NCBI GenBank assembly: GCA_051294905.1
Contig: CM119372.1
Span: forward strand, 37,758,001-37,822,000
DNA length: 64,000 nt
From: Botryllus schlosseri
Lineage: Eukaryota
Direction of reading: 5' to 3'
Of this stretch, positions 29,202-56,060 are shown piece after piece; positions within the stretch are counted from its first letter, which is position 1; the number at the start of each line of letters is the position of its first letter. The notes beneath the pieces were generated by a model that had not been told where the DNA came from, searched no databases, and was given only the letters and a program-made list of their open reading frames with translations. Position numbers and translations under genes: made by a program.

Positions 29202-32200
29202 CTACGTATCTTGTAGTCTTGTGAGCAGCATCAGTACAATGTATGGACAAAATGCGATCGATATGAGTGGAATACACCGAAATCCACTTGACCCAGTTGT
29301 CAGCTCGATGGGTACAATCAAGCTGGCTGTATTCGGGTACGATACAGTTATAGGAGGGGAAGGACACTTTTCACTATCGTCGTAAGCTTTCTTTATTTGT
29401 GGCACCGGTCTGGGCTCGTCGAACTGAAAAATATCAGGATTGTAGGAATGTGAAGTAGGCCTATCACACCAATATCATATCCCAGCTCTCGATGAAGTGA
29501 AATCACCTGCAGGAGCTGATAGAAATACTTTTATGTAACCTGTTTTTCGGCTGCTGAAGATGTTAACAATAGCAGCTGCTCTAATTTCAGAGCAATTGTT
29601 ACAAATGTTAGCTTCTGGCCCCTCCAAATTATCGTTTTGAAGTCATATCGTATAAAACATTCCCTTGTGAATATTCATACTCGTTACCGAAATGGTCATA
29701 TGTATCACAACCAAGATGTTTCCCCGAGTCCAAAAAGTCCTTGCAAAATCAGTTAGCGATTCATACCGTTTCAATATTGTGTTTACATATCTGCCTGTTA
29801 AATGCGGGAGTGGTGGTTTGCTGGCGGCATCGCCCACAATGCTATCAAAGCCCTGAGCAGCTGTATTACATGCTTGAGTACAATTGGAAATCTAAGAATT
29901 AACGTTGAATACAGTTGTCGACACTACGTTTCTAGCAGACATTCATTAATGTTGTCACCAACGCAGAGCAATCACGGCTATCTACAAAGCTTTGTACGTA
30001 GTTTACTCATCTATGTGACCTGATTCAGTGCCCTATACGGAACGGTCAAAATTTTTGGTTCCATTGCCTTTGTTAAATTCCAATTACCATCATACGTGAG
30101 ACAAGATTTAATGCGTAATCTACCTGGATTGGTCCGCACTGAACGTACACTTGAGTTCTCAACACTTGTTCATTGTAAATGCGGATTTTCTCTTTAGTCC
30201 ACTGGAACTGAAATGAAATCAGAATACTTTGAAATTTCAGCCGAAAGCAGTTCAATATGGCGTAGTAAATGGTAATTCGGCAAAGCTAGTGCATTGTTTT
30301 TGAAAGAAGACTTATTACCTCAAGTCTGCAACTCATGGCCATAAGAAGTAGCTATTATTCAAATTAAATTTTTGACTAGATACTTTCTTGATCCGCTTCA
30401 AACGAAATACGTGGTTTTATCTTTCACAATTACGGTGATACTATTTTTATACACTAATTCTGTAAATAATGCTACACTTGAAACAGACTATGCTCTTATG
30501 ATTCTAGATAGAGAAGGAAGGCAAATATTTTGCAACGATGAAAATAAAACGTCACAAATAACGTGTTGCGTCAATAATGGATATTCGATACATAAAAGTG
30601 CCTTATGCCTTTAAAATACTAACGTCGATAGTTAATACCTGTTCAGCAACTTTTAGTAGTTCATCGGTCTGTGAAGCTCCAACTGTCCTGGTAATCACTA
30701 CAAAAGTACTGACATGACATATAACGTTCGGATAATATATAGGTTTCACTTTACCGCTTTCAGTCGGCGCTGTTTCGCATTCGGTTAAATTCACTTTCCT
30801 AGGATAATACCCAAGATGTGCTAAGCACGACTCGCCACCTTGCGAGTTGTTGACCTGGATAAAATATGCATTGTATAGAGATTGTAAAGATTGTCCTCTT
30901 TTCAGTATATCCAATGTCATACTGTCCTACCACACCAATTCGAATGAGCTCAAGACCAATCAACTTCAACTCATTTACATCACTCGATATACTTTCCGCA
31001 TATTACTAGCACTAATAGGACCATCATAAATTCACTTACAAATGTGATTTCGTCGCGTGTCTCGGTATTGAAGGTACATTCAACGATCAGATTGTCGCCC
31101 TTTCGCAATTGCACATTTCCCGGTAGATATGCAGTTTGGAAGCTCTCATGTCGGAATGCATTATCCGTAGCTACAGGACCCAATTCTACGCCATTTCTAT
31201 AAGATATCAGACTTGTTAAATAAACTAACTTAAACGAACGAGATGCCCATTTCTACACAATACGATAGATTCATGTTTCTAAATACGTATCATAGATCTT
31301 TACTAGTTTCAGATATCTAATAGTTTCTTCTTCACTAGCTCAAATTGATGATAACCAGAACATTTAAACAACTATATTAGCATAGTATACACCAGTGGTC
31401 AGGAACCTTTTTTGTCCGAAGAGCCATATTGGCCCTATTTTTTCCATTTTAACTCCCAAAGAGCCATACTTGTAGATCGACTGTTACGTCACAATTGAAA
31501 CTTCGTGACGTCGTGGTAGCACTAATTTCAACTAACTACATGGGAAATGTCGCGTGCGCCATATTTTCTCTGTTAAAACCCGTTCTAATCATACTGGTTA
31601 CCTTATTTAAGCATGCAAAACATGAGTTACTAGAACGTAGGCTCGTCGTGATTGTCCTTTTAAATGCGAGAACTCATGATCACATGCGTAAGTGGAGTCA
31701 AACATGGCCACTACAGCAGTAATATGCCTACCAATCTAAAATTTGTGATACATCAGTGACGTCGGGTTAGGGGAGGCAAGTGAGGCAGTACCTCACCTGT
31801 CGTCAGGATGAGTGAACGAAAATTGTGAAACTTTCAATTACTTTTGGTATCTTCTATCGATGTTCATGAATGACACGATTTTTAACATTTTTTTCCCGAA
31901 ATCACACAATTAGCATATTTATTGTTCGGAAATAAAGCGCGAAACGAGAGGCAAGGTACAGACGCAGACACAGACCATTGATTACACAATTCATCGTAAA
32001 CAGCTTATGATTTATTATAACTGATATTAATCTAGTCTAATTGTCACCGAGATTCCGAAGATCTAAATCCTCAAAGTAATCGGCAGTTACATATAACGCT
32101 GCGCCGCACGCCTACGTCTTATAGCCGGTAGTACAGAGCGTATTGGGCCTACCAATCAAAAACATGGATAGCTACTACATTTTTTGTAATTTGAGTATTA

Positions 32201-35200: not shown

Positions 35201-38200
35201 TTCGCAATCTAGCAATTACCTATCATACCTAGCAGCTCATGGCGTGTCCTAATCTGGAAAAATGAACCTGTTTAAGCAGACCGCCGTTGAAACTTTCTGG
35301 ACAAAAGACTAGAACTATATTTTACTCTTTTTAGAAGTGGTATTTGTATATTCTTTCAATGATGAGTATTATACGATGACTTCTAATTATAGTTTCAGTT
35401 CTTTTGCCTGGAGAACATACATGTTGAAGCATAAAAGCAAGTGTAGTAATGCCTTAAATTTTCCAGAAATAAAGCTATACACCAGGGGTTCTCAACCTGG
35501 GGGGCGCGCCCCCCTTGGGGGGCGCGGGAGGCTCTCAGGGGGGGCGCGAAAAATTGACGAAGTCAGTATAGGGGGGCGCGAAAAATTCACAAAGTCAGTA
35601 TAAATTGTACGTGTCTGAACATGTGTTTCACATCCATTATGAGAAGACGATGAATGAAGATGAAATTTATTCCATATTCAAGAAAGCTTGCAAAATACAA
35701 ACTCTAGCAACAGCGCTCAACTGAGTATAGTCTGATTTCAACTTCATCTGAGCAAATTTTTAAAATTCTTTGGAGATATAGAGAGCAATTCTCACGTGTA
35801 AGTCATTCATTGCTTCATAGCTTTGACAGTAGCCTAAAGCTTGTCGCGCTGGGCAGCTCTTGTTAGTAGCTTGCGAACTGCACTGCCTAAGACAGACTTA
35901 GATGCAACATAGGTTACCCGGTTTCGCCCTCAATTAGGCTATAAATCAACACAATTAATTCATTTCGAAAACTGATCAAATTTAGCCTGACAGGACAGAA
36001 CGACGCCTTGCTCTCTGTACTCACTAGCAGCATCAGGATTAGTCTCAGGGTGACCTACATTGAAGTTAATTGGATGTCTTGTTCAATGTTTTTTGTTATT
36101 TTCAAACAAATTTGAAGAAATTTGTCAGCAATGTAAAAGACTCAACAACTGGAATGCAGATTCAAAATTTGCGTAAGATATACCTTATGTATACTATTAG
36201 ATCAGGGGTGCGCAGCCTGCAGCCGTAGAAGGGAATTTGAGCGGCCGTCGACGCCTAATTCAATTAGTATGTGTTTGCGGCCGTAGACATGCAAATTACA
36301 ATTACGAATTCACTCCCGCATTTTTGAGAGATTTTAATTAATCTTGAAATTTTCTTCGCCCTCCACGCAATTCAACAAGACTTCATTTTTCTATTTTAAT
36401 GCAGTAGCGCCCTTCTTAATCTGAGCCGGAATGGGAATTGGCAAGAAATAGCAATTCGTTCGCGGCCCTGCAAAATTTTCGCGCCCCGCGCGACAATATG
36501 CACATCCCGGCAACTATTCATAACATTGCCACTCGCGATTTCGGTGCGTACAATTGGCCATTGTGAAAAGTAGAATAGTCCGGAGTTCACTGGGAATGGA
36601 TATGGACAGTTTACCGTAGGAATTTTGCGTCCAGATCGTTCATTGCGGCTATGCCCTGGAATGCGGCCTTACGCTACATAAGCAATCGAAATGCGGTCAT
36701 GATTATTAAAAACGTTGCCCACCTCTGTATTAGATGATGTGCTCTTTTTGACATGACGATGAATGCAAGGGGGGTCAGGGGGGCGCGAGTTTTTTGACCA
36801 TCTCCAAGGGGGGCGCGTGTCAAAAAAGGTTGAGAACCACTGCTATACACTATATGGAATTTTTACGATCTGCCATATTTTTAATTATCGTATACTAATC
36901 ACGCAAAGTTTTGAAGCCGTATCCGACACAACTTCTCCGTATTGCTCTTCGAATGAACTAAGGGCCTTATATTATCGGGGAGGGCGCCATGCCATGATAT
37001 TCTCTAAAACGGGGTGTTCGGGTAAACGAAGTATTAATATGGCATTTCTATATCAATACTATCATTTACATCCCATGATATGGACGAATGCTTATTCTGT
37101 CAAAAATTGACACCTCCTGGGATACATCAATATGAATCAAGCAATCTACACTTTCCGCATAGCTCCATTTGCAGCTTTTGCCAGTCCATGCGAACGAATT
37201 ACGATCGTTTTCGCAACTACTTACTTACTTGAGTAGATTTAAAGTCAATCAATTCTGCTTCAAGTAGGTTTTGGTTGCTTATGAAAGAAGTTCTTCTACT
37301 CGTACTTAAGTAGATGTTTTTCGTCGCTACTTCCACTTCTACTTGAGTAGCTTTCTTGACTACTTTGACCACCTCTGCGTGTCACATAGTTCCATGATTT
37401 TGTAGTGAAGAAATTCAGCCCACCTGAAATGCCGCAAACGTATCCGCTTTCCTAGCTCCCTCGTATATACGGTAGAAGTAAACAATGTTACTGGAGTATC
37501 TTCGGAAATTGTCTGGAAACATTTTGTTTGTATTTGAAATATGCCGTGGAATCTCCATAAGTAAGACCCCGCACTCACCAACCGGATGCATTCTGTAATG
37601 CAGTGTCCCTGTAGTTGGAAATCTGGTGCCCTGGGTGGAATGATCTGGCTTTGGTGAACTAGGCTTCCTGTGGTCAAGATTCCCGCGTCGAATTCGCGCA
37701 ATGTGGATGTGTAATGTATTTTCATGCCCGACGAATCTTCAAACGGTGATATATGTAATTACAGTAACCGTTGAATAAATATCATCGCATTGAAATTGGA
37801 CTAACGTTGTATTACAGATGTATCTATTCATGATACTACGATTGTAAGTCCACTAGACCAGTAATTCTCAACCGGGGTCCGCGAAGCCTCCAAATTTGCA
37901 AAATGGTTGATAACCTAATTTGTAAATTACGAGGCAGTTTCGCTCTATAATTGCCCAAACGTCGGGACCCAAATAAACAGAATGGCCATCTAAAATGATA
38001 TATTCTACTGTGCAAACTCATTTTAATTGCCAATAGCCTAAACCTATTGCTGTTTAAAGATGTTTTGTTTGGGTTTTGGAAAAATTTGTTTGAAAAAACC
38101 ATATTCTCTGCAATCTCCGGTGATGTACATAAACGCTGTTCCAGAATAACTACATGATGACTTGCTAAATAGAAATAAGTAGGCTGAATGTTGTATGTTT

Positions 38201-41200: not shown

Positions 41201-44200
41201 TGAAATTATGAAATACGGTCAAGTAAGTAGTTTCAGAAAGTAGATTTGATCGAGGAGTCGCTTACGGTTCACAGTTGATCTGAGCTGGCTTCTTTGGTAG
41301 GAATAAATAAGAAGTATTTCGTGAAAGTCTGTTAATTTTAAGTGTAAGTAATCCAAAATCACAACCATTTCAATAAGCATTGCTTGCTGTAAAAATCTAC
41401 TACACATGTGACTTCTTACCGTCGATCGCAACTTTCTTGTATAGGATTTCCATGACAAAATGCGAGTCGCTTGTGGCAACGGGGTAGCCCACATTTGTTG
41501 GAAACGCGAAGTTTTTCATCCCTAAACTCCATGCGAATAAGATCGTTCCACATTTCGCTCGCTGCCATCCTGATTCGCAAGCGATAGGGCTAGACTCAGA
41601 CGAGGTCAATACCTGGCCGCGATGATGTCAGGTTAATTATAAATGTTAAGAAGTTATATATACGCGTAATGAAATGTCGGCAGAACCGATTGAAAGCCAA
41701 CCCGCTAACATTTTTTATCCCGTTCGGGACGTCACGGATGCTCCTTGAAGTTATTCATGAGCTGATGTCGCACTGGCCATAGTGATTCCATTGAAAACAA
41801 TAATTCGGAGTGATTCGAATCATGTTATTCCAACACCAAATAGGCCTACTGAGCCAGGGGTTCATAACCTGTGAGACTTGCCACGAATAAGCCCTGAATA
41901 AATCCGCCATCAATACGCCTACTTCACCGTAACAATGGAGATAAATTAAGATTTTACATAAAAAACTGATACATCGATAGTACAGCATGTTGCCGTGCTA
42001 TTCCTTTTCCTTTCCCGTGGTCTTATACTTGTGAATGCGGTTATTTAACAATCTTATTTCTGAAGAGAAGGCAGGGATATTCAAATTGACACGCGACTGG
42101 CTCTAGCCACCAGCAAACCCAGAATTAAGACATTGTCAGAGCAAAACGAGCTCAAACATAACATGAACTGACATCAGTGTGGAATTACGTTTATTGTGTT
42201 GTAGGCCTATTTGAATTATTTATCATTCTAACTAACAGTTACTGTAGAGACAGTTTTTTTTAATTAGAATAACGTGTCTTAATTTTTACAAAAGTCTGAA
42301 AGAATAGGTGGTAGGCCTACATAAATTTTTCATGACTTTCAAATGAGGTCAGCGTATGAAAATGGTGTGAAACCCTTGTACCAGATTCCGAAAAAAAAAT
42401 GATTCAAAACTATTTTAATAAATTTTAATAATACTGTCCATCGACGACAGTGTTTGAAAATAGTGACAGCTATACCACGTCAGGGCATTCCATTAACATT
42501 TATATCAAAATTGAATGTATAAAGGAAGTATACTGACTTCAAGGTAACGTAATAGGTAGCTTAACCGATCTCACCTGAAATCTCCGGCGACATTCCCTGA
42601 TAATAATTTGAGCGACATTGTATTCCTGGCCTCTTCGAAAGAGTGGTTCGAACTGAAATTGCGAAATACATTTTACAAAGATACTTTGACTACGTAGGCT
42701 ACTATGTCCCAATACAATATCTATTCATATTGCTAAATTTATTCAATTCAAGCTTTTTGACTGACTCTCATCAGAATCGATCATTATTAAATCGCCGCGC
42801 ATGGGACTTGAGACTGCTTTGATAATTAATTGGAGATTGTGTAATGGTTATGCGTCCGGCTTCTCGATCGGTAGTTCGTGGGTTCGATCCCCGGCCGGGC
42901 CATACCAAAGACCCGAAAATTGGTATCCGCAGCTATCCTGCTTGGCGCTCAGCAATCACGGATAGCATGGAGGAGAAAAAACGGGAGCGCAGACTAGATG
43001 ACCTCACGGCCGTATCGCAACTCCGTCGTCAAAGCATCTCGATGGTGCAGGCGAAAAAGAATATAATATCTCTCTCTCTGTTGTTGTTTGTGGTATTCAT
43101 TGTGTTGGTCGACTACTATGGTCTTTTACACCATGCCAATTTTCTTCATTTTTAATCTGTAGCTGCAGTGTTATAGCACGGCCCACATGATGTTTGGTGA
43201 AAAAAATGTTCCAATTTAGTTATTTATGAACATTGATGTGTACCATCAATATAATCATCGACTCATGGAGGTGTTTCACAATTTTGACTTACTCATCCAG
43301 ACGGCAGGTGAGGCACTGCCTCACCTGCGCCTTATTGGACCGCACGTCACTGCTGCAGACACTTAATTACCGGAAATTTAACTACCCAAGGGTAGGCAAC
43401 AATTATCGTCACTATAGCCTACGTGCCTTGTGTGATATATGCGAATTCATGTGAGCCCAAAATGGGTGCTATGTTTTACCAACATCAAACCGCAAATGTG
43501 AATTTGTTGCTCATGAAGCACAAACACTCTAGAGACTGCCGACAATCCCCGGCATATTATGTTAGTTAGAATGTCACAGCCGCCTAATAAGAGACTGGTC
43601 ACAAGAAAGTACCTATTTTCCACCTGCGATATCCATTATTCGAGGTAGGCTACATACGGGATTGCATTCGTATTGTTACTCGCGGTAATAATTATATTAA
43701 GTCCTATTATTACCTATTAATATCCCTCCATGTGATTGTGAGGAGAACCAATGCTCATTTCCTTTAGTCACAATACAGCGATTCAATCCTAAACCCAAAC
43801 AATCGAATGAGACACCGAAATGAATCGGAAATGATCTGGCGAATCGTGGATTACACCGGGTTGCTATCAATTCAAATTGGCTTAATTGGACATGGCGCGG
43901 TTGATGCAGCGCCGCGCTGGCGGTGTAGAGAAGCACTTCCTGAGGAAATGTTGTTTAAATGAACACCCGTCGCTGAACGAAAATGTTTACACCTTGTACC
44001 GATAATATATTATTATCGACGTCAACTTCATTAGCGGTTAATGACTTTCAGCTGACAATGCTTGGCTTGATATGATAAAGGATATTGCCAATTATTTGGA
44101 TTGGGATAGCAAAGAATAATAAAAATGAATTAAAATAAATAGCTACAGTATGATGCCTAGCAATGTGTCCCAATCCAATCTACAATGTGAACTATACTGA

Positions 44201-47200
44201 CTTATTCTATATAGTATATTGGATTGATATAAACAGAAAAATGATGTGCGAAATATTTTTAGCAGATTGATTGCTTTCCTGATTAATATTTATAGCAAGT
44301 TACATTTTACACGGGTTAAATGTACGTCTATGCGGATTCCCGCACAACCTCTTATATAAGTATACGCTGACATGCCATTGACCATTGAAAATTTTTGTGA
44401 ACACCGCCATTTTAAAATTGAAAATGTCTGAGGAACACAAGCCATGTCGCTTGAATCTTTCAATGATTGAATAATTTGATACTAGCTCATCTGGTCCTTT
44501 GTGCGTCCAACAAATGCCCGCTTTAATTTATAGGTCTATATCACATGCACTCACATGACACCCATTCATACGCGTTATGGTGAGATAGAGTTCGACTCCA
44601 GACTCATTTCCCAAGTGTTGTAAGTTTATCTGGGCTCCTCATCGCCATATCATCCGTGTAAGCGGTGTCTTATAAAAAGCATACAAGCGGGCCGTGCTAC
44701 AAGTCGTCTGCTAGGGAATACAACAATTGGCCTGGTGTAAATGACCATAGTAGTCGATAAACGCACTGAATACCACAAACAACAACTACAACAATCCATT
44801 CATACAAAGTATTCATTTATCGAAGTGACTTGAGATGAATCATCTTACAATAATTACATCCTTACCGATTGACAGGATGGAATTCTAATCATTCCTTAGC
44901 ATTGTCGCGTTTATTATAATGCGTTACGGATGTAACACCTGCACGGTAAAGCCGCGGCGCAATCACACGAATGCTTCCAGGCGAGTGGTTAACGCATGTC
45001 ACGACTCACAACAAATACCATAGAAATGCCGGTAGATAGATCTCAACGCTATGTAATCCGACAACTGCAAACACGCTTTCCTAGCTGTACGATCGTCAGA
45101 TCCGCACGCTTAATTTTTCTTCCATTCTTCCGATTCGCATTATATCGAACCGTTTGAAAACAGTTGAAAATGCTATCATCAAAATCGCACAGAACACAGT
45201 GCTGTGCTAAAGTTTTACAAAATTTAATTAGCTGACGTTGGCCCTTTATACAAACATTTACCAATTTACCTATAAGATGCGTACTTCTCGACATCACTGT
45301 TAGCATTAGCATATCATAACTTCTATACATAGTCCAGCCGCTCGTCCGTTGAAACATGTTACGCGGAGGTGGAATAGGGTAGATTTTCCAAATTCCACTG
45401 ACTATAATTGAGAAATTGTCTGGGTGCCCAAGTAAACGCTGCACACAAAATTTGAGTCAATTCCAACCAGTAAATGCGAAGTTATTACGATTTGAAATAT
45501 TAATCATTTTTGGTAGTTATAGTATTTACGGTGGCAAATTACGTTACTTCACCATGACCACTTCGTGTCCCAGGCATGCCTTAAGGAAGGATTCCTGACA
45601 AGCCGATATCAAATGCATTGTAAAGAATTCCCCCAAAGTATGTTCTGATTTCGTGAAATCTACATTGACGAGACAAATGATACTCCCAAATATTGACTAT
45701 CCCTTGGGAAAGACATTTTCCTACATTTTTGATCAGCCCTAGTGTACTATGTGAAACTGATTGTGATCTGAAAACTGGAATAAATTATACATAGTAGATA
45801 TTTCTAGTGAGCATTAGACCCGATTAAAGCGCGAAATATATTCCAAAGTGGAACCCGTGGGGAACCCTACTCTAATTTATCCTGAACCGACCCGAAATCA
45901 ATTCGTACATGTATTATTTTTTTCGTCTTGGAAATTTTAAATCGACTCCATTCTTAACGCTGTTCTCACCTCGGTAATATGAACTTTATTTGCAATTCCA
46001 CCAAATCGAAAAGCCTCGCAGTGACGCCTGCCCTTTCGAAAGGCGTCATGATGTGATGCTCTCACGGTGACGCTTTTCCCCTCCGTTGCCACTGCAAGGA
46101 AGTTGACTATCAATGAATGAACAGATATCTCAATTTACAAGATATTGAGATGTCATAAAAAATGCAGATTAGACCTCCTTTGCGCTCTACCTAGGCCGTA
46201 TAATTTTTCCACTGAACATACGACAAAATTCCATGGACTTTGGTTTACTAAGAATCCACGTCAACACGAATACGATAAGTATTGATCCTATTCTAGCGAT
46301 TGAATCACTATGCGGATCCAAGGCGGCGGGACAGCGTAGTGGTAGGTTGCACAGCTGCAACACCATACAGTATTTCTGTACTTAACTGTTGAGGGTTTAT
46401 CTAGACCACGGGTGTTCAACCTTTTTGCTATTCACGGCCTCATTTCGATTACATATATGGCGTACGGCCTCATTCCTACGAACATTCGTAATGGTCCACT
46501 TGGACGGAAAATATTCAAGCTGAATTTGCTATCGGGAGACTTGTCATCGCGGACAGCCATTGCTGTGTTCCGAAGCATCAATGTTGACTTGAAAAATACG
46601 TAGCGCACGAACGTTTTTAATTGTAGAACAACAACGCCTCGGTGAGCTTTACACACGTACCGAAATCGCGAGTATCAATGGTATCAAAAGGGATTACGAA
46701 TCGTTGTCTAGTAGTGCCAGGCGCAATTTTTTCATATTTATGAAAGAATTTCGTCAATAATAATGGTAGTTGCACGTATTACTATCAAATATTTATCTTT
46801 TTTCCGCTCATGTAATCAGATTTACCGATATAGAGCAGATTGAAGGGGTGTCGTCGAATTTTAGGGCATGATGACTCATCTTCGGGTAGACCCAGCATTG
46901 TTAATGATCATTTTGTTGCATTTTGTTATTTCTTGACCTCCCATCAGGATTGTCGGTATAATCAAATTATATTGGAGTCGCCAAAACGTACGAAAAAAAA
47001 CTTTTGTGAGACGCACGCGATTCCAATGTGTATTTCTTAATGGGGTACATTTGCGGTTGGCATATGCACCGTGTGACTCAGACTGCAAAGACACTACTAC
47101 AATAAAATCGAATATTGAAGGAAGCAAATTTGAATAAAAATATCTCACTAATTTTGGAGCTGATTAGTACATTCAAATAGCACGTTGATGACAACCATGC

Positions 47201-50200
47201 TATTTGAATTACTTGTAGATGGCCGCAGATTGGATAACCCTGATCTAGACTCTGCCTCGCCACCCAAGCGGCGTCTTGCAAAAAGCCTAGAACGAGAAGT
47301 GAACGTTTCTATAGCTCGGCAGTTCAGGAATGATAAAAGGTAGTATCGGCGTTACGACGATTGACCATTGATGCACAACTAATTGCGCATGCCACCGACA
47401 GTTCAACAAACTATTTCAAAGGACTGTACAGTATATTACGCTGCGTTCTAAAATACTTTGAGACCCACCGTGATGAGTGTTGGTTGTCTGCGTACCTCGC
47501 GTGAATGACATATACTTCATATGTGCTGCATAATGACATGCAGCAGGTATGGACTTTAGGTTACGAAAACGCTTTTACCACACGCCTTCAAGTAGGGAGT
47601 AGAGTAGAGAAGCAGAGAAAGTAGAGCAAGTAGAGAAATAAACAATAAAATAAGTCACCATACCAAACACCGGATTTTTATAACTGAATTCTCCAGTGGG
47701 TGAGTTGAGCAGTTTCAAGTAGAGGTCGCCTAAAAAATACACAAAATACATCCAATGTTTCAGGAAGTGCACAGCACACATTATTCAAATGACACCCAAC
47801 AAACAATATATATTCATCCTAAACATTAAACAATCCAACCAACATTATAGGAAATATTCAAAGTAGCTGCTTGTGCTGTTGCTGTTTTCCTGACTACTGC
47901 ATTAGAGTTTGTGACACCAGAAATGTTGTCCCGTCGCATTGGAACAGTATAACGAATTCACAGTGGAAATGTTTTTTTTCATTGGATTGCCTCCTCCACT
48001 TTCATAACCATATACCACATACGCCACGACGCTTATATTTAGGAATACGTTGCCAAATCGAAATACAAAATGTCGTCGACCGCTATCACTGACAGGGTAT
48101 TAAGCTCTTCACGATACACAATGCGCATTTGTAACATTTGATCATGTGTTTTCACGTTAATTACTGGCATCCGTTCCAGACATATCATTATTAGGTTTTC
48201 GATAGTTATTTGCCAAGTTACGACACTCATTATATCACCCGCGATTCGTGCTGCGCTCGTGACCGCAGACACGCTCAGCTTTTTTATTGAAACAACATAT
48301 AGGCTATTCACGATACATAGCATGAGTGTAATCAATATGTCTACAGGACTTGCACTTGCTGCCATAAATCTAGCACACGGCGAGTAAAGGAACGTTGTTC
48401 GAAATGATGGTTAAACATCATTTCACGTCGCGTTTAAAGTATTCGTGGTCACTAGAATACATGTATTAAATACCGGATGATCGGACTATATTTGCATGTG
48501 TGCATTGATTAATGATCTTGAATACAAGCCTATCATTATCTGGACACAACCAAAAGTTTATTGTGTCATGAAATATGCATGTGAATGTACGAAACATCAT
48601 GTTTAGTTAATATAAACGTCGATGTATACTTATCATCACTAGAAATGAAATATTTAAACATTCATTATCATTTCTATATCGAGAAGAGCAACAGAAATAT
48701 AGAAATTGATAGCGGATTTATATTTTGGCAAATGATTCTGTTAGTTGCTTTTGGTAACGACGACAAACTCTCAGCGGATCATGACTCTGTAATAATCAAG
48801 AGAGCTATAGGTTACCAGATTCTTTGACATCGCGTGTCTGCTCATGAAGAGGTTTTGTTTCGTCAATGTCCGTCCCTCCGTACGCCCAGAATATGCGGAA
48901 AGTGTCGTTCTAAGCAGATAAGTAAGTGACTAAGGATGAATGTCAAATGATAATGCCCATAAAAATCCGCTCAAACCAGAGTGCGATTCCGCTACAATCG
49001 GGATATTCCTAAGTATGTTGTAGCTGCACAGAAACACATTGTTGGTACCTCAATATCTTAGACGATATCCGTTCGTTCGATACGTAAGATTAGGGTAGGT
49101 ATATTTATATCGAAATGAGTCAAATTAGTAGTTGAAAATCGCTTTTTACATTTATAGTGCGACTATTTTGAGTTTTATTCCGTCCATTGCTATTTGACTG
49201 ACACCCTCGGAATGCAGAGAAAACTATTCATATAACACTATATCATACTTATTACTGCTACATCCAAAACTGATCCCAGTAATGCTAACAGAAATATATT
49301 TGCTGAACCGTATATGACTATATCATGCGCAATGGCACATTTTAATGATCGCGAATGAAAGAACAAATCATTGAATTACACTCGAACGATTGTCAGGTGA
49401 CATTCTAACATATTCCTACGATAAGGGTGCGCAGTTAAGATATCATTTTTAAAATGGCGAAAACTCCGCGGTATTGTGATCAAAATGTTGGACTTGCGTC
49501 GGGGCTGGAAACCAATGGAAACTGTAGCAAAAATGGTGGAAAGAAAAAAACATCCTAGTGTTGGCATGCCTTGTTCGCGTACGGCTGATAGTCCTCAGTA
49601 CTATATTTGACTTCAAAATCGGTACATTTATACTTTGTCCCGTCGCATGCAGTCCTGGACTAGTTTGATGAAATGCTTTATTTGTACATGTGATACTGAG
49701 ATGTATCTCTATCACATAAGCAAAACCACTTATACTAATGTATCTGTATCTACGACTTTGCGATCATTATGAGCTCGGCCTTAATGATGATACTATAAAT
49801 TTGGGATTGTGAAACCTGTACTTAGGGACTAATAAGAGTATTTGTTTTAGGGGCAGGCCAAAACACCATATAGTTTTAACACAAGCATACAAAGTTTTCA
49901 GCTACTCAAATAATTAATCAAATATTAAGTGATACGCTGGTAGAGCAGTGGTCCGTATAAATTGAAAAGACAGGATCATCGCTTCAACCAGCGATTATAT
50001 GTAGCCGATAAGTGAGGGAAGGGACTTAAATCATAAGAGCAACCATACAGGTGGAATTTCGGAACTATATCAACATATTTTTGATGCACCGGATTCAGTA
50101 GTTTAGGTCGTGACCAAATGCTCCACAAAAAAAACTCAAATAATTTCGGAAACTAGTCTTCAAATGAAATCATGTCATCATGTCAATCATGTCATAATTT

Positions 50201-53200
50201 CCAAAGCGTCCCACTCACCACGTGCCTCTACCTCATTATTTTCCAAAACATGCTTCCATAATTGCGTAACCACAGATATAGCGCACTGAAGTCGTATACA
50301 TAAATGTATATACTATATGCTATATATAGGTAGTTGGGCTATGGAGTATTGACAGAAGTAATGGTGCGGTCCCCGTTGATTCCATGTTTCATTGGAATTG
50401 GTGCACCGAAAAACTAATTAATAGCTTATGTTATTTGCGGCTTGAGGCTCACCGTAATGTCTACGTCGTGTCGGTCACAAGTGATCAAGGGTCTCGTGAT
50501 AATTGCTTCTCTTCTAAACATCGTTTCCCAGACTTTTGACTGTACAACGTCTTGTGTGGAATCCCTTACGTACGTTTTATTATCGCTGACGTAAGCATCC
50601 TAAAGTGATAGAAAGCAAGTCGTTATGTATAACTTAAGCATAAATGAAATATCCATAAACATGATTATGTTACATTATTCGGTTGCTATAATGCTAATAT
50701 ACCCTTCCATAATATGCATTCATATTTATCTTAACCGAAACTTAACTAGATATGTCATACATTCGAGCATCGACCATATACGTAGGCCTATATATTAGCC
50801 TAACTTCAAATTCATTGGCGATTTACAGGGCGTTCGGGTGCTCTGAAATTAATAATATTTTGGTATCTGGAATCAGTGCGACAACAGCATTCGATTATTG
50901 CCATAAATTACACTGGTCAACACATATTTTTGGGCAGACAAAGTGAGAGTGGTTTCGGGGGTTCTGAAGGGCACTGATTCCGAATATGACCTTAGTGTTT
51001 TCAAATTGGTTCTTGTTGTGGAGATAACCCATTGGGCTGTTTTGACCAAAATCTCCCATTTTGCGGTAATGACTGGATATGAAAATCGGCTATGTGGTAC
51101 TATAAAGTTTAGAAATTCAATCTACTTGTTATTTTTACACACAGAAGACTATATTAAATCAAAATACAGCAACAGCACTATATTTTGGGGTATTATATTT
51201 ATCATAGTTACAGACTTTCACGGATATCATGTACGTGAATAAACTCCTGTCTTGTATAGAAGTATTCACCTAGATACTCAAATAACGTGGCATTAATTCA
51301 ATCAGTTTTACGTCAACCACCTATTTGTAAATTTGAAATAATCAGTTGGAATACAATATTATTGATATATTTTAAATCGAAATTGTTTTTTTTTGTACGA
51401 TTTTCGCCTATAAGCTATTAAGTGCAGTTTCTCGAAAGGTTCCGGCAACGGTCTGACATAATATGATCAATGGTTCATCTCATCTGCACTGGTATCTTTC
51501 TATTGTTGTTCTGATGTCTTGTTAGAACCTCTCCCCTTGCTAATCAACATGATGATCGGGAAATATATCAAGATGACTGAACAGGAAGTGAACTTTTATG
51601 CACATGTTTGTTCCAAGTTTTCGATATGCACATACGAACTTTCGGACCTACTGTTTGTAGATGGGTGCTTTGTGATCAGCTAAAAAGTCTTTTTTACTAC
51701 ATCTTAGGAGAAATTACATGCTGTGAACTCCTCCTAATGTGAAATTGGAATCTTTCATCGGTATTCGAATATACCAGATACCAGATTTAAGCTTCTCGTT
51801 TGATAGGGCTACTAGGTATACCCACTTCGTTGACTCAGTGTAAAATTATCCATTTACATGTCAAAAGAAATGGGACACATATAAGTATTGTAGTTAAGTC
51901 TTTCAAGGACAAATTTTATAGTTTAATACTCCTCTTTAGTCTTGGTAGAATGACCAATTGATGCAAGAGAAGATGAATTTCCATTTTGGAAAAGTACAAT
52001 TTTTAGGCTTGACAAACTGCTTTTTGACAAACAAATATTTCGCATCATGCCATGTTAATATTGATAGAATGACTGAGAATGACATGAAGGTTCTTCATAG
52101 TCAATCGACCATTTATGCGCAGCATAAAATTAGAAAAAAACTACGATTTTCTTCCCACCTGGTGAAATATTTATGGCTAAATACCGTAATTTTGGGCATT
52201 TTCAGGGTTATAATTATTTTCTAACAGAGAGCCAATCTGACAAAACTAATGTGATATTCGTAATCAGCAACCTCAAAAACCCCAGAAACGGCTCTCAGGT
52301 GTTCTGCCTGAATTTGTTTTCATTTTGTTTACCAGTGTTATAAATTCGAAGCTGTTTATGATGATTGCCACTATCACAGGTGAGGCTAGGTCCGTCTCTG
52401 CCCCATCTCTCGTTTTGCGCTATATATTTGGATAATAAATATGCAAACTGTGATATTGTGGGAATAAATATGTTCGATAGAAAATGTTTAGAAAATATGT
52501 TTAGAAAATATGTCCTCGATAGAAAATATCAATAATCACTGAAGGTTTCACAATTTATTTATTCATCCTGACGACAGGTGAGGCAGTGCCTCACTTGCCT
52601 TTCCTGGATGCATGATCCTAGAAGTAAGGTGCATCGAACGACCTTCTATCTTAATATGCCATGGACAGATTTCAGAAAATATGCAATAATCTTTGAAGGT
52701 TTCGCAATTTATTTTGCTGATCCTGACGAGGGGTGTGGGACTGCCTCATTTTGCCTCTCCTTGCCGCACCTCCCTGGCGTATGTCCATGAGAACAACATG
52801 CTTACCAGTGATTTTATGAGGGGATAAAGGGGTGGTTGCGAGGGAAGGGGTTCAAAGCTACTATTTTCTATGATGTTTCACAATCACACTGTATCAACAC
52901 TCTGCATCTTTCGAATTCTGCTGAGACGTCGAGGAATTCGAATATTGCAAACATGAGGTCACGCAAGTTTTTCGCGTGTAATATCGACCTTTTCAATCCC
53001 GATTCGACCTCCGTTGACCAATAAAAACAGCTTATATTTATTTTCTGTTCTGACAGCTCCGATGAGGAATAATGTCAATTCTATATGCGGTTGATAAATT
53101 AATCGGATGATTGCGTGCACAATTATATGAATTCTTGGTGCTGACATTTGTATCCATTTTGATCACAAGACCTGTCATCTGCACAGTGCATATGCGACCA

Positions 53201-56060
53201 TTTGTACCCGGCAGATTCGACAACATCATATTTATGGCGTAAATAAACTTGACACAATAAAGCATCTGCATCAAATCTGATCCGAGCTAATCCATTGAAG
53301 GTGTGGTTGGATAAATCTGATGAACGTGACGAGACGAACCCATACGCATGCCCGATTCCAAGGATTACTGTTCCGTTAAACTGACTTAAGAACGAATAAC
53401 ATACTAAGAACTGAAATCTAATCCGATATATCGCCTAGGAGTAACGCCACTATCATATAAAAAGCTGTACTTTTATAACTGGTTGCTTTGTAATATTCAT
53501 TTTATTCAAAAGTGTCATGCTGGTAATTACTGCAATGTCCAATATAATAATAGTTGAGAGCTTTAGAAACCGCTAAGGTCCCAAGAGTGGCTAGATGGCC
53601 CTAATTCTGTTGGCCGAGTTTGAAAATTAAGTACAGGTGTGGGCCTACCCCCAAACGCGCATTTATTTTCCTCCAAGTCCAGAATGGGTAGGACTATAAG
53701 ACAGGTTTACAATCTTGCTAATGGGGCACTGCTATCTAAATGTGACGTGGTCTCAAATTATAGATGAAAGTGTTCGACCCTAAACTGCCTTGACTGCATC
53801 AATTCATATTATTTACTGCGCATTACACTGCTTTCTTCGTCCACCATTTCAACACTACAGAGTAGCCGTCATCTAAACCTATTCCCTCTCCATTTGTTCT
53901 AAGCGCTCCTACCGCACAATTTATAGCCTGCGTCCCCCTAACACGTGCCAAAGCGGGAGATGATGTTGTCCACTTTAGAAATAAATTCATTATTCGGATA
54001 TAGAATGTAATCTAGAACGTCATAGCTTAATCCATTACTTGTTAGCAGTAGCCATAATTATTTTTGAATGGGGGTAATCTATAATTAGTCCTTATAATTC
54101 AATACAGGGGGTAATGATATAAGCGGTAAGTCTATCCTTAAGAAATGTATCATCTACAGGCATGCCAGCTACCCAACGTCAAATCAGCTGATTATAAACT
54201 ATTGTCTCATATGCAATCGCGGGCGATACCAGTCCTAGTACGGCCATCATATAGGCCTATACTTACAATCACGTAAGATATTGTGTTTATAACTCCCATG
54301 AATAGGTAGTCCGTTTCATGACTATTTTGACCAGCTTTCGATAGTCCAATTGCCATCCAACCCGACGTGTCCATCGACAACTGAAGGGAAATAGAAGTCA
54401 GTTGTATGTAATATTAGGATTATCATATTTTGAGATCCGTAAAGAAAGACACGATTGACAGGCTTCAAAAGTCAATATAGCGGATGAGTAAATGGAAGAA
54501 CACTCTTCTCCGTGACATCTTGGACCATTTTAGGCTAAAAAGGAAGACATTTGGGCGAAGGGAGGACATTTCATGAAAAAGGAGGACAAATTCTCCTAAA
54601 GGAAAACGTATGGTAACCCTACTTAATATCATATAACCTATTAAATTGGGAATGAACAATACAAGGAATACAGTATAGCTTGGAGGCGTAAGTAACGGTA
54701 ATGTACCGTGATCCACGTAAAAATTGTATTGTAAAATTGTATTGTAAAATTGTAAAAGATATTGAGATATGGGGAAACGGGGTAGCCTACTTTGGCTCAG
54801 TTGTCATGACTATTTCCATCATACTCATATTAGTCATGCAAGCATTTTCTAATTTACTTTCTAATTTTTTAATACCCAAAATGCAAAAAGCAGATAGCTT
54901 CGACTAAAATCCGAAATACTCCTTACACATAACCATTTGAGTAACTAGTACAAGTAGTTGTAATGACTCGAGTCGCAATTTTTCGTTGACTCGTCTGATT
55001 TTATCAAATATGTAAAATGACGCGACTCAACTCGAGTCAATTTGTCTACTAACTCACCGTGCAGTCAATTCATTGCTCGTGACTCAACGTCGACACATTC
55101 TATATGACTTATTCGTGTCTCGGATATCAGGACTGATAATTGAAAAATAGGCCCAGAAACAGTTTTTTTCATTTGAATAAAATTGTTTAGAATGAGTAAA
55201 ATGAGTTCATTTTGAATCCGAAGGTCTACGATATCCCCCAGGGGGTTTACAGAAGTGACTTGAGCCTGACTTGAAGTTAACGCTGAACAGTAAACAACGT
55301 AACTTGGACTTGGACTGAAGTCTTAACACTATGACTAAGACTCAACCCGTTGCTCCCTGACTTGGAATCGGACTGGGCTCGGTTGTGAATTGAAAATGAC
55401 GGGACTGGACGTGAGTTTAACCAATAAAAGTGAAATTGACTTGTGGCTAGGGACCGTGTGGCTTGGTTACAGCCCTGCCTACTAGTGGACTCGGAAAAAA
55501 GTAGAAACACTTCATTACTGTAGAGTAGGGTTACCATATTTTGGAATTGGGAAAGGAGAACACTTTTACCAAATCAGAAAAGTTAGACGATCTCGATTAA
55601 GAACAGCCGATTTTGCTATTTTTGGTGGAAAATTTGTGAGTTGACTAAAAAAAAGTCATCACTTTCGTCGGATAGCCGAATGACCCGTTCGGACGTCCGT
55701 TTAAGCTAGCGTCATTCAAGCCCATTTGCAGTCGAATCTCTCCATTATCCTACCTGTAAAAGCAGCAAGGACGCATGGTAACCCTACTATATAGTATACC
55801 TTGAATGTGATATTCTCCTCGTTAAATGACCAAGCCAGTCTTTCCGTCCCGGACTTGGTCAGAACAGTGTGGTAGTCATAGTAACTTCTGTCCAAATCGT
55901 CAAAAGGTTCGTTACTTCCAGATTGCATGTGTGCCCCAGAACTGTTCCAAAGACCAAGGTCGGCATAATTCAGATGTATTGCCGACTGCCATTGTCCCAG
56001 TGTATTCGTAACGCAGCACAGTAATGTGACGAACAGGAGTATGGCTTGAAAAAGTTTCAT
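29202..56060 (-). CDS. MOXD1-like: DBH-like monooxygenase (MOXD family) gene B: signal peptide + DOMON + Cu type II monooxygenase N and C domains + hydrophobic C-terminus; ~647 aa; all copper ligands substituted
   Basis: 15 GT-AG exons with consistent phases: 55800-56060 (MKLFQAILLF...LAWSFNEENITFK), 54267-54380 (LSMDTSGWMAIGLS...), 50453-50599 (DAYVSD...RPLITCDRHDVDIT), 48816-48909 (NDTFRIFWAY...), 47664-47729 (DLYLKLLNSP...), 45970-46091 (...HCEAFRFGGIANKVHITE), 42575-42652 (FEPLFRRGQEYNVAQIIIREC), 41420-41612 (...CGTILFAWSLG...FVMEILY), 37579-37736 (DSSGMKIHYT...IIPP...GHCITEC), 37424-37512 (...LGKRIRLRHFR), 31040-31196 (...GDNLIVECTFNT), 30755-30854 (...GESCLAHLGYYPR), 30639-30697, 30124-30207 (FQWTKE...VQC), 29202-29423. 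Total 1944 nt with no internal stop. Collinear with MOXD1 as I recall its sequence. The 37736 acceptor (AAG) and the 48816 donor are the least certain boundaries. Confidence 0.9.
31393..33376. mobile_element. hAT non-autonomous element with internal direct repeats
   Basis: CAGTGGTCAGGAACC...GGTTCCCGACCACTG; TSD GTATACAC; ~31850-32500 resembles ~32640-33280. Confidence 0.88.
33465..34325 (+). mobile_element. hAT derivative carrying a C-terminal dimerisation-domain remnant
   Basis: ORF 33776-34036 ...CCQPTTATVERFFFILGKLL; homologous copies at ~39451-40323 and ~61688-62345; boundaries approximate. Confidence 0.7.
35483..36842. mobile_element. hAT element, middle layer
   Basis: CAGGGGTTCTCAACC...GGTTGAGAACCACTG; TSD CTATACAC. 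Confidence 0.9.
36203..36727. mobile_element. hAT MITE, inner layer
   Basis: CAGGGGTGCGCA...TGCCCACCTCTG; TSD TATTAGAT. Confidence 0.85.
37859..38611. mobile_element. hAT MITE
   Basis: CAGTAATTCTCAACC...ATTGAGAACCACTG; TSD CACTAGAC. Confidence 0.88.
39451..40323 (-). mobile_element. hAT derivative, second copy of the 33465-34325 family
   Basis: Reverse-complement similarity including the dimerisation-domain remnant at ~39800-40030. Confidence 0.7.
42832..43080 (+). mobile_element. tRNA-derived SINE
   Basis: A-box-like TGTGTAATGGTT, B-box GGTTCGATCCC (42881), then GGGCCATACCAAAGAC...TGGTATCCGCAGCT, resembling the Meta-type SINE core; ends in (TC)n. No intact acceptor stem, so not a tRNA gene. 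Confidence 0.75.
46407..47242. mobile_element. hAT MITE
   Basis: CACGGGTGTTCAAC...TTGGATAACCCTG; TSD ATCTAGAC; internal match to 23101-23882. Confidence 0.85.
50911..52337 (-). mobile_element. Internally deleted Chapaev3-like (CMC superfamily) DNA transposon
   Basis: TIR CACTGGTCAACA...TGTTTACCAGTG; 3-bp TSD TTA; subterminal inverted repeats; decayed transposase YRKLGTNMCIKVHFLFSHLDIFP...QGERF*QDI at ~51480-51630. Family assignment is from recalled motifs. Confidence 0.65.
55526..55786. mobile_element. hAT MITE (TAGGGTTACCAT type)
   Basis: TIR TAGGGTTACCAT...ATGGTAACCCTA; imperfect TSD CTGTAGAG/CTATATAG. Confidence 0.8.

Follow-up and report, generated by a model that had tools for sequence, protein, structure and literature searches.

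An intact DBH/MOXD-family gene of Botryllus schlosseri that has lost all six copper ligands, most likely a binding pseudoenzyme

DBH, PHM and tyramine beta-hydroxylase are two-copper enzymes, and MOXD1 and MOXD2 are orphan relatives for which we know of no substrate. In DBH, the copper ligands are H262, H263 and H333 at the CuH site and H412, H414 and M487 at the CuM site (PMC4846438). Here, we analyzed a gene of this family in a 64,000-nt window of the Botryllus schlosseri genome (the whole stretch of DNA under study: assembly GCA_051294905.1, contig CM119372.1, positions 37,758,001-37,822,000 of the forward strand), whose own coordinates are used throughout. MOXD1-type proteins, both vertebrate and from Clavelina (P0155) and Glandiceps (P0045), share with the Botryllus protein the same layout of signal peptide, DOMON, Cu2_monooxygen, Cu2_monoox_C and hydrophobic anchor, as well as the same cysteine framework, at approximately 30% identity. 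Unlike them, however, the Botryllus protein has all six copper ligands replaced, and the clade to which it belongs sits on a long stem branch, is fixed for other residues at ten positions that are nearly invariant among canonical members, and is more conserved on the CuM face but less so in the DOMON domain. Similarity also extends to human DBH (4ZEL), with which the Styela clava ortholog aligns over 460 residues (E = 2e-64) and whose conserved DOMON Asp columns and disulfide Cys columns are present in the Botryllus protein as well. In place of the six DBH ligands, the Botryllus protein has A/Q/L and Y/R/S, so that no dopamine hydroxylation would be expected, and whereas human DBH is soluble or secreted, the Botryllus protein appears to be membrane-anchored.

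Two further systems are informative about the loss of ligands itself. Engineered PHM mutants (H107A, H108A, H172A and M314I; 5WJA, 6ALA, 6AMP and 1YI9) are among the structural matches, and in these proteins the two-domain catalytic core folds despite the absence of a single ligand or of a whole copper. Each of these is a single mutant made in the laboratory from an active enzyme, whereas the Botryllus gene carries six natural replacements, kept by selection in several species. A natural parallel is found in the hemichordate Ptychodera flava (XP_070555180; P0031), which has also lost the six ligands (T/Y/A and D/Q/K) and kept the architecture, although its replacement residues differ from those of the Botryllus clade. 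This loss is independent, because the sister of P0031 is a canonical hemichordate protein (support 98) rather than the Botryllus clade, and it suggests that the route to a pseudoenzyme is recurrent. Partial ligand losses occur in P0066 and P0127. In the literature that we searched, there is no description of a naturally copper-free, selected DBH/MOXD clade, which agrees with the initial annotation, to which no described fully ligand-less MOXD clade was known.

The gene model was built from spliced alignments with P0001 and P0002 (Styela clava), the closest two proteins. The gene lies on the minus strand (56060-29202) and comprises 15 exons (Table 1), with a 1944-nt coding sequence that encodes 647 amino acids with no internal stops and with GT-AG boundaries at all 14 introns of the spliced alignment. 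The rebuilt model thus reproduces the unbroken frame of about 647 residues over 15 exons that was first described for this locus. The junction of exon 5 is ambiguous by itself and was settled by its length, since exon 5 of Styela is equally long.

Table 1. Exons of the copper-free DBH/MOXD-family gene, in coordinates of the 64,000-nt window
Feature	Position	Strand	Content and basis
Exon 1	55800..56060	-	Start codon, signal-peptide-like N-terminus, start of pre-DOMON region; aligns to P0001 and P0002
Exon 2	54267..54380	-	DOMON; Pfam match E 4e-4
Exon 3	50453..50599	-	DOMON; 147 nt, against 150 nt in the Styela exon
Exon 4	48816..48909	-	End of DOMON; spliced alignment and Styela exon layout
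Exon 5	47664..47729	-	Linker; 66 nt, the length of Styela exon 5
Exon 6	45970..46091	-	Start of CuH-like domain; clade-specific RHC motif replaces canonical T-x-Y-x-C
Exon 7	42575..42652	-	Former CuH His-His, now V-A-Q; A282 at 42611-42613, Q283 at 42608-42610
Exon 8	41420..41612	-	Remainder of CuH-like domain; third CuH His replaced by L351 (41442-41444); PF01082 E 3.9e-9
Exon 9	37579..37736	-	Start of CuM-like domain, DSSG...IPPR block; PF03712; aligns to 4ZEL residues 304-363
Exon 10	37424..37512	-	Former CuM His-x-His, now Y-T-R followed by E; Y427 at 37465-37467, R429 at 37459-37461
Exon 11	31040..31196	-	CuM-like domain; PF03712 E 4e-7; 157 nt, the Styela exon length
Exon 12	30755..30854	-	Former CuM Met replaced by S502 (30828-30830); NNS-x-GGESCLA ... 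CETAPTE; most conserved exon of the clade
Exon 13	30639..30697	-	Start of C-terminal (dimerisation-like) region; 59 nt, the Styela exon length
Exon 14	30124..30207	-	C-terminal helical region with one conserved Cys; 84 nt, the Styela exon length
Exon 15	29202..29423	-	Ser/Thr/Gly-rich stalk, C-terminal hydrophobic anchor (residues ~622-644), stop codon

Transcript contigs from three studies (runs X16, X18 and X20) contain the joints 41612|42575, 37736|41420 and 37512|37579 with GT..AG ends, which are exactly the predicted exon 7/8, 8/9 and 9/10 junctions. The loose ends of these contigs read into the 3' end of exon 6 on the 42654 side and into exon 11 on the 37424 side. Direct splice support thus covers exons 6-11, and exons 1-5 and 12-15 are drawn from homology, from conserved exon lengths and from the lengths of contigs, one of which, at 2085 nt, would fit a span from exon 3 through the 3'UTR. 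Words from exon 15 are present (0.8-1.0) in 20 runs from seven studies of the same organism, and raw bulk RNA reads of run X23 leave a trace on exons 7-8, too few for junctions, which fits low expression there. A Botryllus preprint gives 'MOXD1' as a cluster marker, but it leaves the paralog unspecified and was therefore set aside. The run type behind the spliced contigs was guessed, but RNA is their only sensible source, because the joints are GT-AG and there is no genomic retrocopy. A processed retrocopy was ruled out as their origin, the genome being without a second P0002-like locus. The gene is intact, transcribed and correctly spliced.

These data also bear on whether the gene model could be an artefact, with the true mRNA drawing on different exons in which the His and Met ligands are present. 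Such a risk attaches to any ab initio model, and exons 1-5 and 12-15 are without direct junction reads. However, exons 7, 8, 9 and 10, which bear five of the six substituted positions, are exactly those found in the transcript contigs, and for them an artefact is already refuted. The same substitutions also occur in P0001, an independent transcript, and in the Styela gene. Moreover, tblastn with eight family proteins turned up no further family exon within the gene on its own strand, and within the gene span Pfam scans of the genome matched the modelled exons only, so that these searches revealed no alternative His-bearing exons in the introns. We therefore assign a negligible probability to an artefact.

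The assignment of the six ligand positions was made in several ways. When 47 full-length members of the family, including the Botryllus protein, were aligned with MAFFT, 33 had HHH/HHM and the Botryllus protein had AQL/YRS, while seven further members depart from HHH/HHM by gaps or missing stretches only. A profile HMM made from 22 canonical members alone aligns to residues 58-611 of the Botryllus protein (E = 9e-111), with high posterior support at the ligand columns (VHH/VAQ, iHY/ILY, HaH/YTR and EMC/ESC). In HMMER comparisons with solved structures, Botryllus exon 8 covers the PHM H172 column directly, and the Styela ortholog aligned to human DBH 4ZEL covers all six positions. Exons 7 and 12 searched singly against solved structures gave nothing usable, and the mapping therefore leans on the family alignments and on the alignment of the ortholog to 4ZEL. 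All six codons lie exactly where they had first been reported as substituted (Table 1). The alignments show that neither copper site would be able to form, as the CuH site would consist of Ala, Gln and Leu and the CuM site of Tyr, Arg and Ser. Both copper binding and ascorbate- and O2-dependent hydroxylase activity are predicted to be absent.

The remainder of the protein is that of a family member. Exon-wise Pfam searches matched, in this order, DOMON (PF03351; E = 4e-4), Cu2_monooxygen (PF01082; E = 3.9e-9) and Cu2_monoox_C (PF03712; E = 3-4e-7). The Botryllus protein has the architecture of the copper type II ascorbate-dependent monooxygenase family but neither the CuH nor the CuM site. Eleven columns have Cys in 80% or more of 18 canonical members, and all 11 are Cys in the Botryllus protein. 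Hydrophobic 17-mers are found at residues 1-22 (signal-peptide-like) and within residues 622-644 at the C-terminus. Both results bear out the earlier observation that the structural cysteines, signal peptide and hydrophobic C-terminus have been kept. There are six N-glycosylation sequons. An AF2 model was made of the Styela ortholog rather than of the Botryllus protein (pLDDT 85.4, pTM 0.80), and its best Foldseek match is human DBH 4ZEL (TM 0.81) over all four domains. The four-domain DBH fold is thus confidently predicted for the ortholog, and we infer the same fold for the Botryllus protein because it is 42% identical to the modelled ortholog and has the conserved cysteines.

Among 1.8 billion representatives, the only close relatives are P0001 (a transcript) and P0002, which are 42-44% identical to the Botryllus protein, compared with roughly 30% for canonical members. 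The three form one clade (SH-aLRT 100) with a stem branch of 1.32 substitutions per site, known from three species only. The single good match to P0002 in the Botryllus genome is the ligand-less gene, and its 15-exon layout recurs in the Styela gene, with 7/15 exons identical in length. Five of the six ligand losses are common to Botryllus, Styela clava and P0001. P0001 and P0002 retain one CuM His, and the change of the first His of H-x-H to Tyr is found in the Botryllus lineage only. The initial description of a fully ligand-less protein thus holds for Botryllus, in which all six are lost, but not for the clade as a whole, in which five are. The loss of these five is ancestral to the three-member clade. 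A word-indexed protein search (with P0002, a P0001/P0002 profile and the clade-specific region 425-535) returned canonical MOXD-like proteins only, and it is uninformative on the distribution of the clade because it missed even the known member P0001. NCBI already lists the Styela ortholog under the generic name 'DBH-like monooxygenase protein 1 homolog'. DNA lying 11-13 kb ahead of the window start matches the upstream flank of the Styela gene strongly, but this was rejected as synteny, as it is a hAT transposon (DUF4371, Dimer_Tnp_hAT).

Pairwise maximum likelihood gave dN of 0.44-0.51 and saturated dS of 4-7, with omega of approximately 0.06-0.12, far from 1 but, given the saturation, an unreliable point estimate to be read as a rough bound. 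NG86 and YN00 fail through dS saturation, and the omega given here comes from pairwise maximum likelihood only, on three sequences. Third-position identity is 0.35, compared with amino-acid identity of 0.42-0.47, and the two SNPs present in all three runs are both synonymous. These comparisons show a signature of purifying selection on the clade.

Our results support a model in which this gene encodes a conserved, copper-free DBH/MOXD-family pseudoenzyme, most likely binding rather than catalysing. The ligands have been lost and the determinants of the fold kept, in an intact, spliced gene under purifying selection together with its orthologs, and we observed none of the stops, frameshifts, damaged splice sites or missing transcripts that would mark a pseudogene. 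The initial annotation had likewise argued for selection over random decay, and this view stands, because the gene is expressed, its orthologs share derived substitutions and exon layout, and protein divergence is far below synonymous divergence. The roles that it had suggested, namely small-molecule or amine binding, scaffolding or regulation of an active paralog, are candidate functions. A unitary pseudogene in early decay, in which stops have merely yet to accumulate, could account for the loss of all six catalytic ligands, for the length of the clade's stem branch and for two nonsynonymous SNPs (R312Q and K314Q) carried by one run. However, 647 codons have stayed open across 15 GT-AG exons, transcripts from several studies are correctly spliced, dN is far under dS, and frame, cysteines and exon structure have been kept in three lineages despite saturated synonymous sites. 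The five ligand losses must also be old, because they are common to the clade, which counts against early decay. This explanation is largely refuted already, and we regard it as extremely unlikely.

The protein would enter the secretory pathway and sit on the lumenal or extracellular face of a membrane. Lacking copper, it would receive no electrons from ascorbate and would not activate O2, and no hydroxylation would follow. In PHM and DBH, substrate is bound on the side of the CuM-domain segment around the Met ligand. The former active-site cleft may instead hold a substrate-like small molecule, a peptide or a protein partner such as an active paralog, and we propose a binding role because constraint peaks around the former Met, on the substrate side, and because the replacement residues are fixed in the clade. 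Three-way identity in exon 12 is 74% in the clade, compared with 36% in canonical trios, whereas that in DOMON exon 2 is 0.18, compared with 0.35-0.43; the C-terminal exons 13-15 belong to the stretches with the lowest conservation. At ten positions the clade is fixed for residues that depart from a strong canonical consensus, and the ten lie clustered at the former copper sites. Residues fixed across the clade include His250 of the RHC motif, Gln283, Arg429-Glu430, an Asn-Asn pair and Ser502. Constraint has thus moved to the face of the CuM domain, an indirect hint at function. Some of the strong conservation of exon 12 may, however, come from structural packing and not from a binding site.

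A more specific proposal is that the clade-fixed residues, together with the highly conserved exon 12, make up a new binding site that needs no copper, on what was the substrate face. We consider this possible but doubtful. If true, the ascidian lineage would have a receptor or carrier that takes up an amine, catechol or peptide resembling a substrate, or even a new catalytic site without copper, and the site could show which molecules the orphan MOXD enzymes recognise. The same clustering of ten non-consensus positions at the former copper sites, together with the exceptional constraint around the former CuM Met, would also be expected of a protein that is still an enzyme and performs another reaction, with a new metal site or cofactor (involving His250, Gln283, Arg429/Glu430 and Ser502) or a redox cofactor in the DOMON domain, a domain that in other proteins binds heme or sugars (PMC4846438). 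However, neither A/Q/L nor Y/R/S contains a recognisable metal-binding triad, the DOMON exons are less conserved than in canonical trios, and the literature searched holds no precedent for such a change in the family. We therefore judge continued catalysis to be quite improbable, although less so than early decay.

Within the binding model, the protein could act more narrowly as a regulatory or scaffolding subunit that pairs through the C-terminal dimerisation region with an active MOXD-like paralog and modulates how active it is, how it is trafficked or how it is loaded with copper. In DBH, the C-terminal domain joins the chains into a disulfide-linked dimer or tetramer (PMC4846438), and the C-terminal helices and Cys columns have been retained in the Botryllus protein. 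Pfam scans also located many MOXD-like paralogs in the Botryllus genome, several of them on the same chromosome, and those that could be scored have intact ligands. Conversely, conservation is highest on the CuM face and low across exons 13-15, and we consider a subunit role unlikely, somewhat more so than the new binding site.

A selected, copper-free branch of the family has implications beyond this locus. It shows that the DBH fold has a use independent of copper and oxygen chemistry and that the annotation 'DBH-like monooxygenase' overstates the chemistry of such genes. The clade offers a natural apo form for structural work, and because its strongest constraint is on the substrate-side domain, it could help to identify what MOXD-type proteins bind.

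All six copper ligands of the DBH/MOXD family have been replaced in the window protein. In DBH, CuH is formed by His262, His263 and His333, and CuM by His412, His414 and Met487 (PMC4846438). When 47 full-length family members, including the window protein, were aligned with MAFFT, 33 carried the HHH/HHM set and 7 more differed from it by gaps or missing stretches alone; the window protein read AQL/YRS at these columns. A profile HMM of 22 canonical members only aligned to residues 58-611 (E 9e-111), with VHH replaced by VAQ, iHY by ILY, HaH by YTR and EMC by ESC, and with high posterior support throughout. Against solved structures, a Leu in the exon 8 stretch aligned at His172 of rat PHM, and the Styela clava ortholog, in a 460-residue alignment to human DBH (4ZEL), had R-Q, R, H-x-R and S at the six ligands. 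The family alignment, the canonical profile and the structure alignments thus uphold the complete ligand loss proposed in the initial annotation, whose coordinates for the six codons were all exact in our spliced model.

This model was built from Pfam matches to DOMON, Cu2_monooxygen and Cu2_monoox_C, all found in minus-strand open stretches of the gene; from HMMER, run exhaustively with the stretch of exons 9-10, which returned two close full-length relatives, P0001 (a 1704-nt transcript contig from run SRR32906208) and P0002 (XP_077973645 of the ascidian Styela clava); and from tblastn of both to the window, with splice sites picked for reading frame, agreement with the relatives and GT-AG consensus. 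The gene has 15 exons, all GT-AG, and a 1944-nt CDS encoding 647 aa with no internal stops, so that a homology-guided model reproduces the unbroken 15-exon, ~647-aa frame first annotated. The window has a G+C content of 39% and a single N run. The Styela gene likewise has 15 exons, seven of which match window exons in length (66, 78, 89, 157, 100, 59 and 84 nt), and homology together with the Styela gene structure supports exons 1-5 and 12-15. Alternative His-bearing exons in the introns would have undercut the ligand loss, but tblastn with eight family proteins revealed no additional family exon within the gene.

Positions of features discussed (window coordinates unless a contig or segment is named)
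Feature	Position	Strand	Remark
Window gene	56060-29202	-	15 exons
A282	42613-42611	-	ligand-position codon, CuH
Q283	42610-42608	-	ligand-position codon, CuH
L351	41444-41442	-	ligand-position codon, CuH
Y427	37467-37465	-	ligand-position codon, CuM
R429	37461-37459	-	ligand-position codon, CuM
S502	30830-30828	-	ligand-position codon, CuM
Exon 7/8 joint	41612|42575		transcript contigs
Exon 8/9 joint	37736|41420		transcript contigs
Exon 9/10 joint	37512|37579		transcript contigs
Variants, all three transcript runs	42617, 42623		synonymous
R312Q, K314Q	41560, 41555		run X20 alone, exon 8
High-depth stretches	38462-38638, 39524-40408		intron 8
N run	2575-2800
Tandem family cluster	C2:36.83-37.00 Mb
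Further family loci	C2:31.03, C2:31.85-31.89, C2:14.54 Mb
Further family loci	C12, C16, C1, C83
L032	G000:C2:31878728-31882000		family locus
DOMON-like units (window kb)	~14.2/3.3, -7.0/-7.6, -15.9/-16.2, -20.4/-20.7, -22.9/-23.4, -35.4/-35.7, -47.2/-48.3	-	downstream of window gene
7tm_1 ORF, 351 aa	6255-7310	+	E 1e-17
7tm_1 ORF, 350 aa	10526-11578	+	E 1e-16
hAT-type remnant	24746-26289	-
hAT-type remnants	L061:6925-8639; L060:494-2033

Transcript contigs from three runs (three studies, same organism) confirm exactly the three junctions between exons 7 and 10 predicted by homology, the exon 7/8 joint being given after a 2-base ambiguity reported by the tool. Read on the gene strand, each skipped stretch is bounded by GT..AG (CT..AC on the plus strand), and loose contig ends run into exon 11 (translated N-G-V-E-L-G-P-V-A-T) and the end of exon 6. 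One contig of 2085 nt holds exons 7-10 at positions that fit a transcript from exon 3 to a ~550-nt 3' UTR. For the last exon, 0.8-1.0 of its words were present in 20 runs from 7 studies, with assembled sizes of 8-135 Mb against 495 Mb for the genome. A processed copy is ruled out as the source of the spliced contigs, since the genome holds no second P0002-like locus. Two variants were common to the three transcript runs and both are synonymous; the two found in X20 alone are nonsynonymous and sit in a poorly conserved loop ahead of a conserved Cys. All four runs showed contig depths in the hundreds to thousands over two stretches of intron 8, where chimeric joints were also numerous; these stretches look like expressed high-copy repeats.

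The ligand loss is largely old. In an ML tree of 42 proteins, the window protein, P0001 and P0002 formed a clade (SH-aLRT 100) on a long stem branch (1.32 substitutions per site); membership so far is three sequences. The window protein is 42-44% identical to its two relatives, which share 47% with each other, and ~30% identical to canonical MOXD-like proteins. Because P0001 and P0002 both read RQ(Q/R)/HRS, five losses are common to the clade and old; the sixth ligand, the first CuM His, became Tyr in the window lineage alone within the clade. Ligand loss recurs in the DBH/MOXD family: a hemichordate MOXD1-like protein (Ptychodera flava XP_070555180) has lost all six (T/Y/A, D/Q/K) independently, its sister in the tree being a canonical Glandiceps protein (support 98). 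The P0001 transcript reaches a stop at 551 aa, past its counterpart of exon 13, and so lacks the C-terminal region and anchor; a retained intron, a soluble alternative isoform or faulty assembly may explain this. Partial losses were seen in P0066 (QHH/YHT) and P0127 (KNH/HHT), other family members.

Selection was estimated by pairwise ML over the 531 codons common to the three clade sequences. The dN values were 0.44-0.51 and dS was saturated at 4-7, so omega (0.06-0.12) is a bound only; that dN lies far below dS is nonetheless robust. Third codon positions were 35-36% identical and amino acids 42-47%. Retention of a frame of 550-650 codons, 14 introns and every cysteine in three such distant lineages is not due to chance. 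The window protein keeps 11 of the 11 canonical Cys columns, the conserved DOMON Asp/Gln columns, a signal-peptide-like N-terminus and a hydrophobic segment (residues 622-644) preceded by a Ser/Thr/Gly-rich stalk, and has six N-glycosylation sequons; the cysteines, signal peptide and hydrophobic C-terminus listed as kept in the initial annotation are thereby borne out. It carries predicted secretory-pathway and membrane-anchor features. A confident AlphaFold2 model of the Styela ortholog (pLDDT 85.4, pTM 0.80) had human DBH as its top structural match, with all four domains covered (TM 0.81); the DBH-like fold is thus predicted for the ortholog, and for the window protein via the ortholog only.

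Many other DBH/MOXD-family loci are present in the Botryllus genome. Ligand motifs (HH, H, HxH, M) are intact at the scorable loci, a compact DBH/TBH-like gene on C12 among them, with two exceptions, and the dead copy therefore coexists with paralogs that are active by sequence. One exception, the paralog fragment L032, has a Cu2_monoox_C match with two in-frame stops and Tyr at the Met-ligand column, and may represent either a genuine pseudogene or another dead copy; the other, L004 on C83, has a Y-M pair aligned at the His-His motif.

Homology places the window protein in the copper type II monooxygenase family. It lacks both defining copper sites, with no side chains predicted to be capable of forming CuH or CuM, and for this reason should not be classed as a monooxygenase; the protein would be unable to carry out ascorbate- and O2-dependent hydroxylation. 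Constraint has been relocated within the protein. Overall three-way identity is similar in the clade (0.32) and two canonical trios (0.29, 0.24), whereas exon 12, around the former Met, stands at 0.74 against 0.36, exon 9, at the start of the CuM-like domain, at 0.54 against 0.42 and 0.29, and DOMON exon 2 at 0.18 against 0.43 and 0.35. Ten positions are fixed in all three clade proteins yet unlike strong canonical consensus, and include changes of T-x-Y-x-C to R-H-C, H-H to x-Q, H-x-H-L to x-x-R-E, G-G ahead of the Met motif to N-N, E-M-C to E-S-C and C-x-S to C-E-T. In PHM and DBH, the CuM domain provides the side on which substrate binds. With the strongest constraint on this segment and replacement residues fixed, the former cleft would most likely bind a substrate-like molecule or partner protein. 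The protein may also pair with an active paralog by way of its C-terminal region, although low conservation of exons 13-15 disfavours this, and a new non-copper catalytic site may have arisen. Binding at the former cleft remains the likeliest mode of action.

The window protein is an expressed, conserved family member that qualifies as a pseudoenzyme by all criteria assessed in sequence and transcript analysis. The selected, non-catalytic reading originally put forward is thus strengthened by spliced transcripts, by orthologs with five common losses and by dN far below dS. Pseudoenzymes are common in general; this one lies within a well-studied metalloenzyme family whose MOXD branch has, to our knowledge, no known substrate. 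No ligand-less DBH/MOXD clade was described in the literature searched, and the NCBI entry for the Styela protein already bears a generic enzyme name ('DBH-like monooxygenase protein 1 homolog').

Downstream of the gene, at least seven DOMON-like units lie on the same strand, from window 3193-14205 to ~48 kb before the window start (read there on L061, L062, L064, L065 and L066), uninterrupted by Cu2_monooxygen or Cu2_monoox_C exons; they make up either one multi-DOMON gene or several clustered DOMON-only genes. Apparent synteny with the Styela locus was rejected, being mimicked by a related hAT element adjoining the Styela ortholog (57-76% translated identity). Remnants of hAT-type transposases (Dimer_Tnp_hAT, DUF4371) occur in and beyond the window. 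The interval separating the 14.2-kb and 3.3-kb DOMON exons contains, in antisense orientation, two intronless, closely similar ORFs matching rhodopsin-family 7tm_1.
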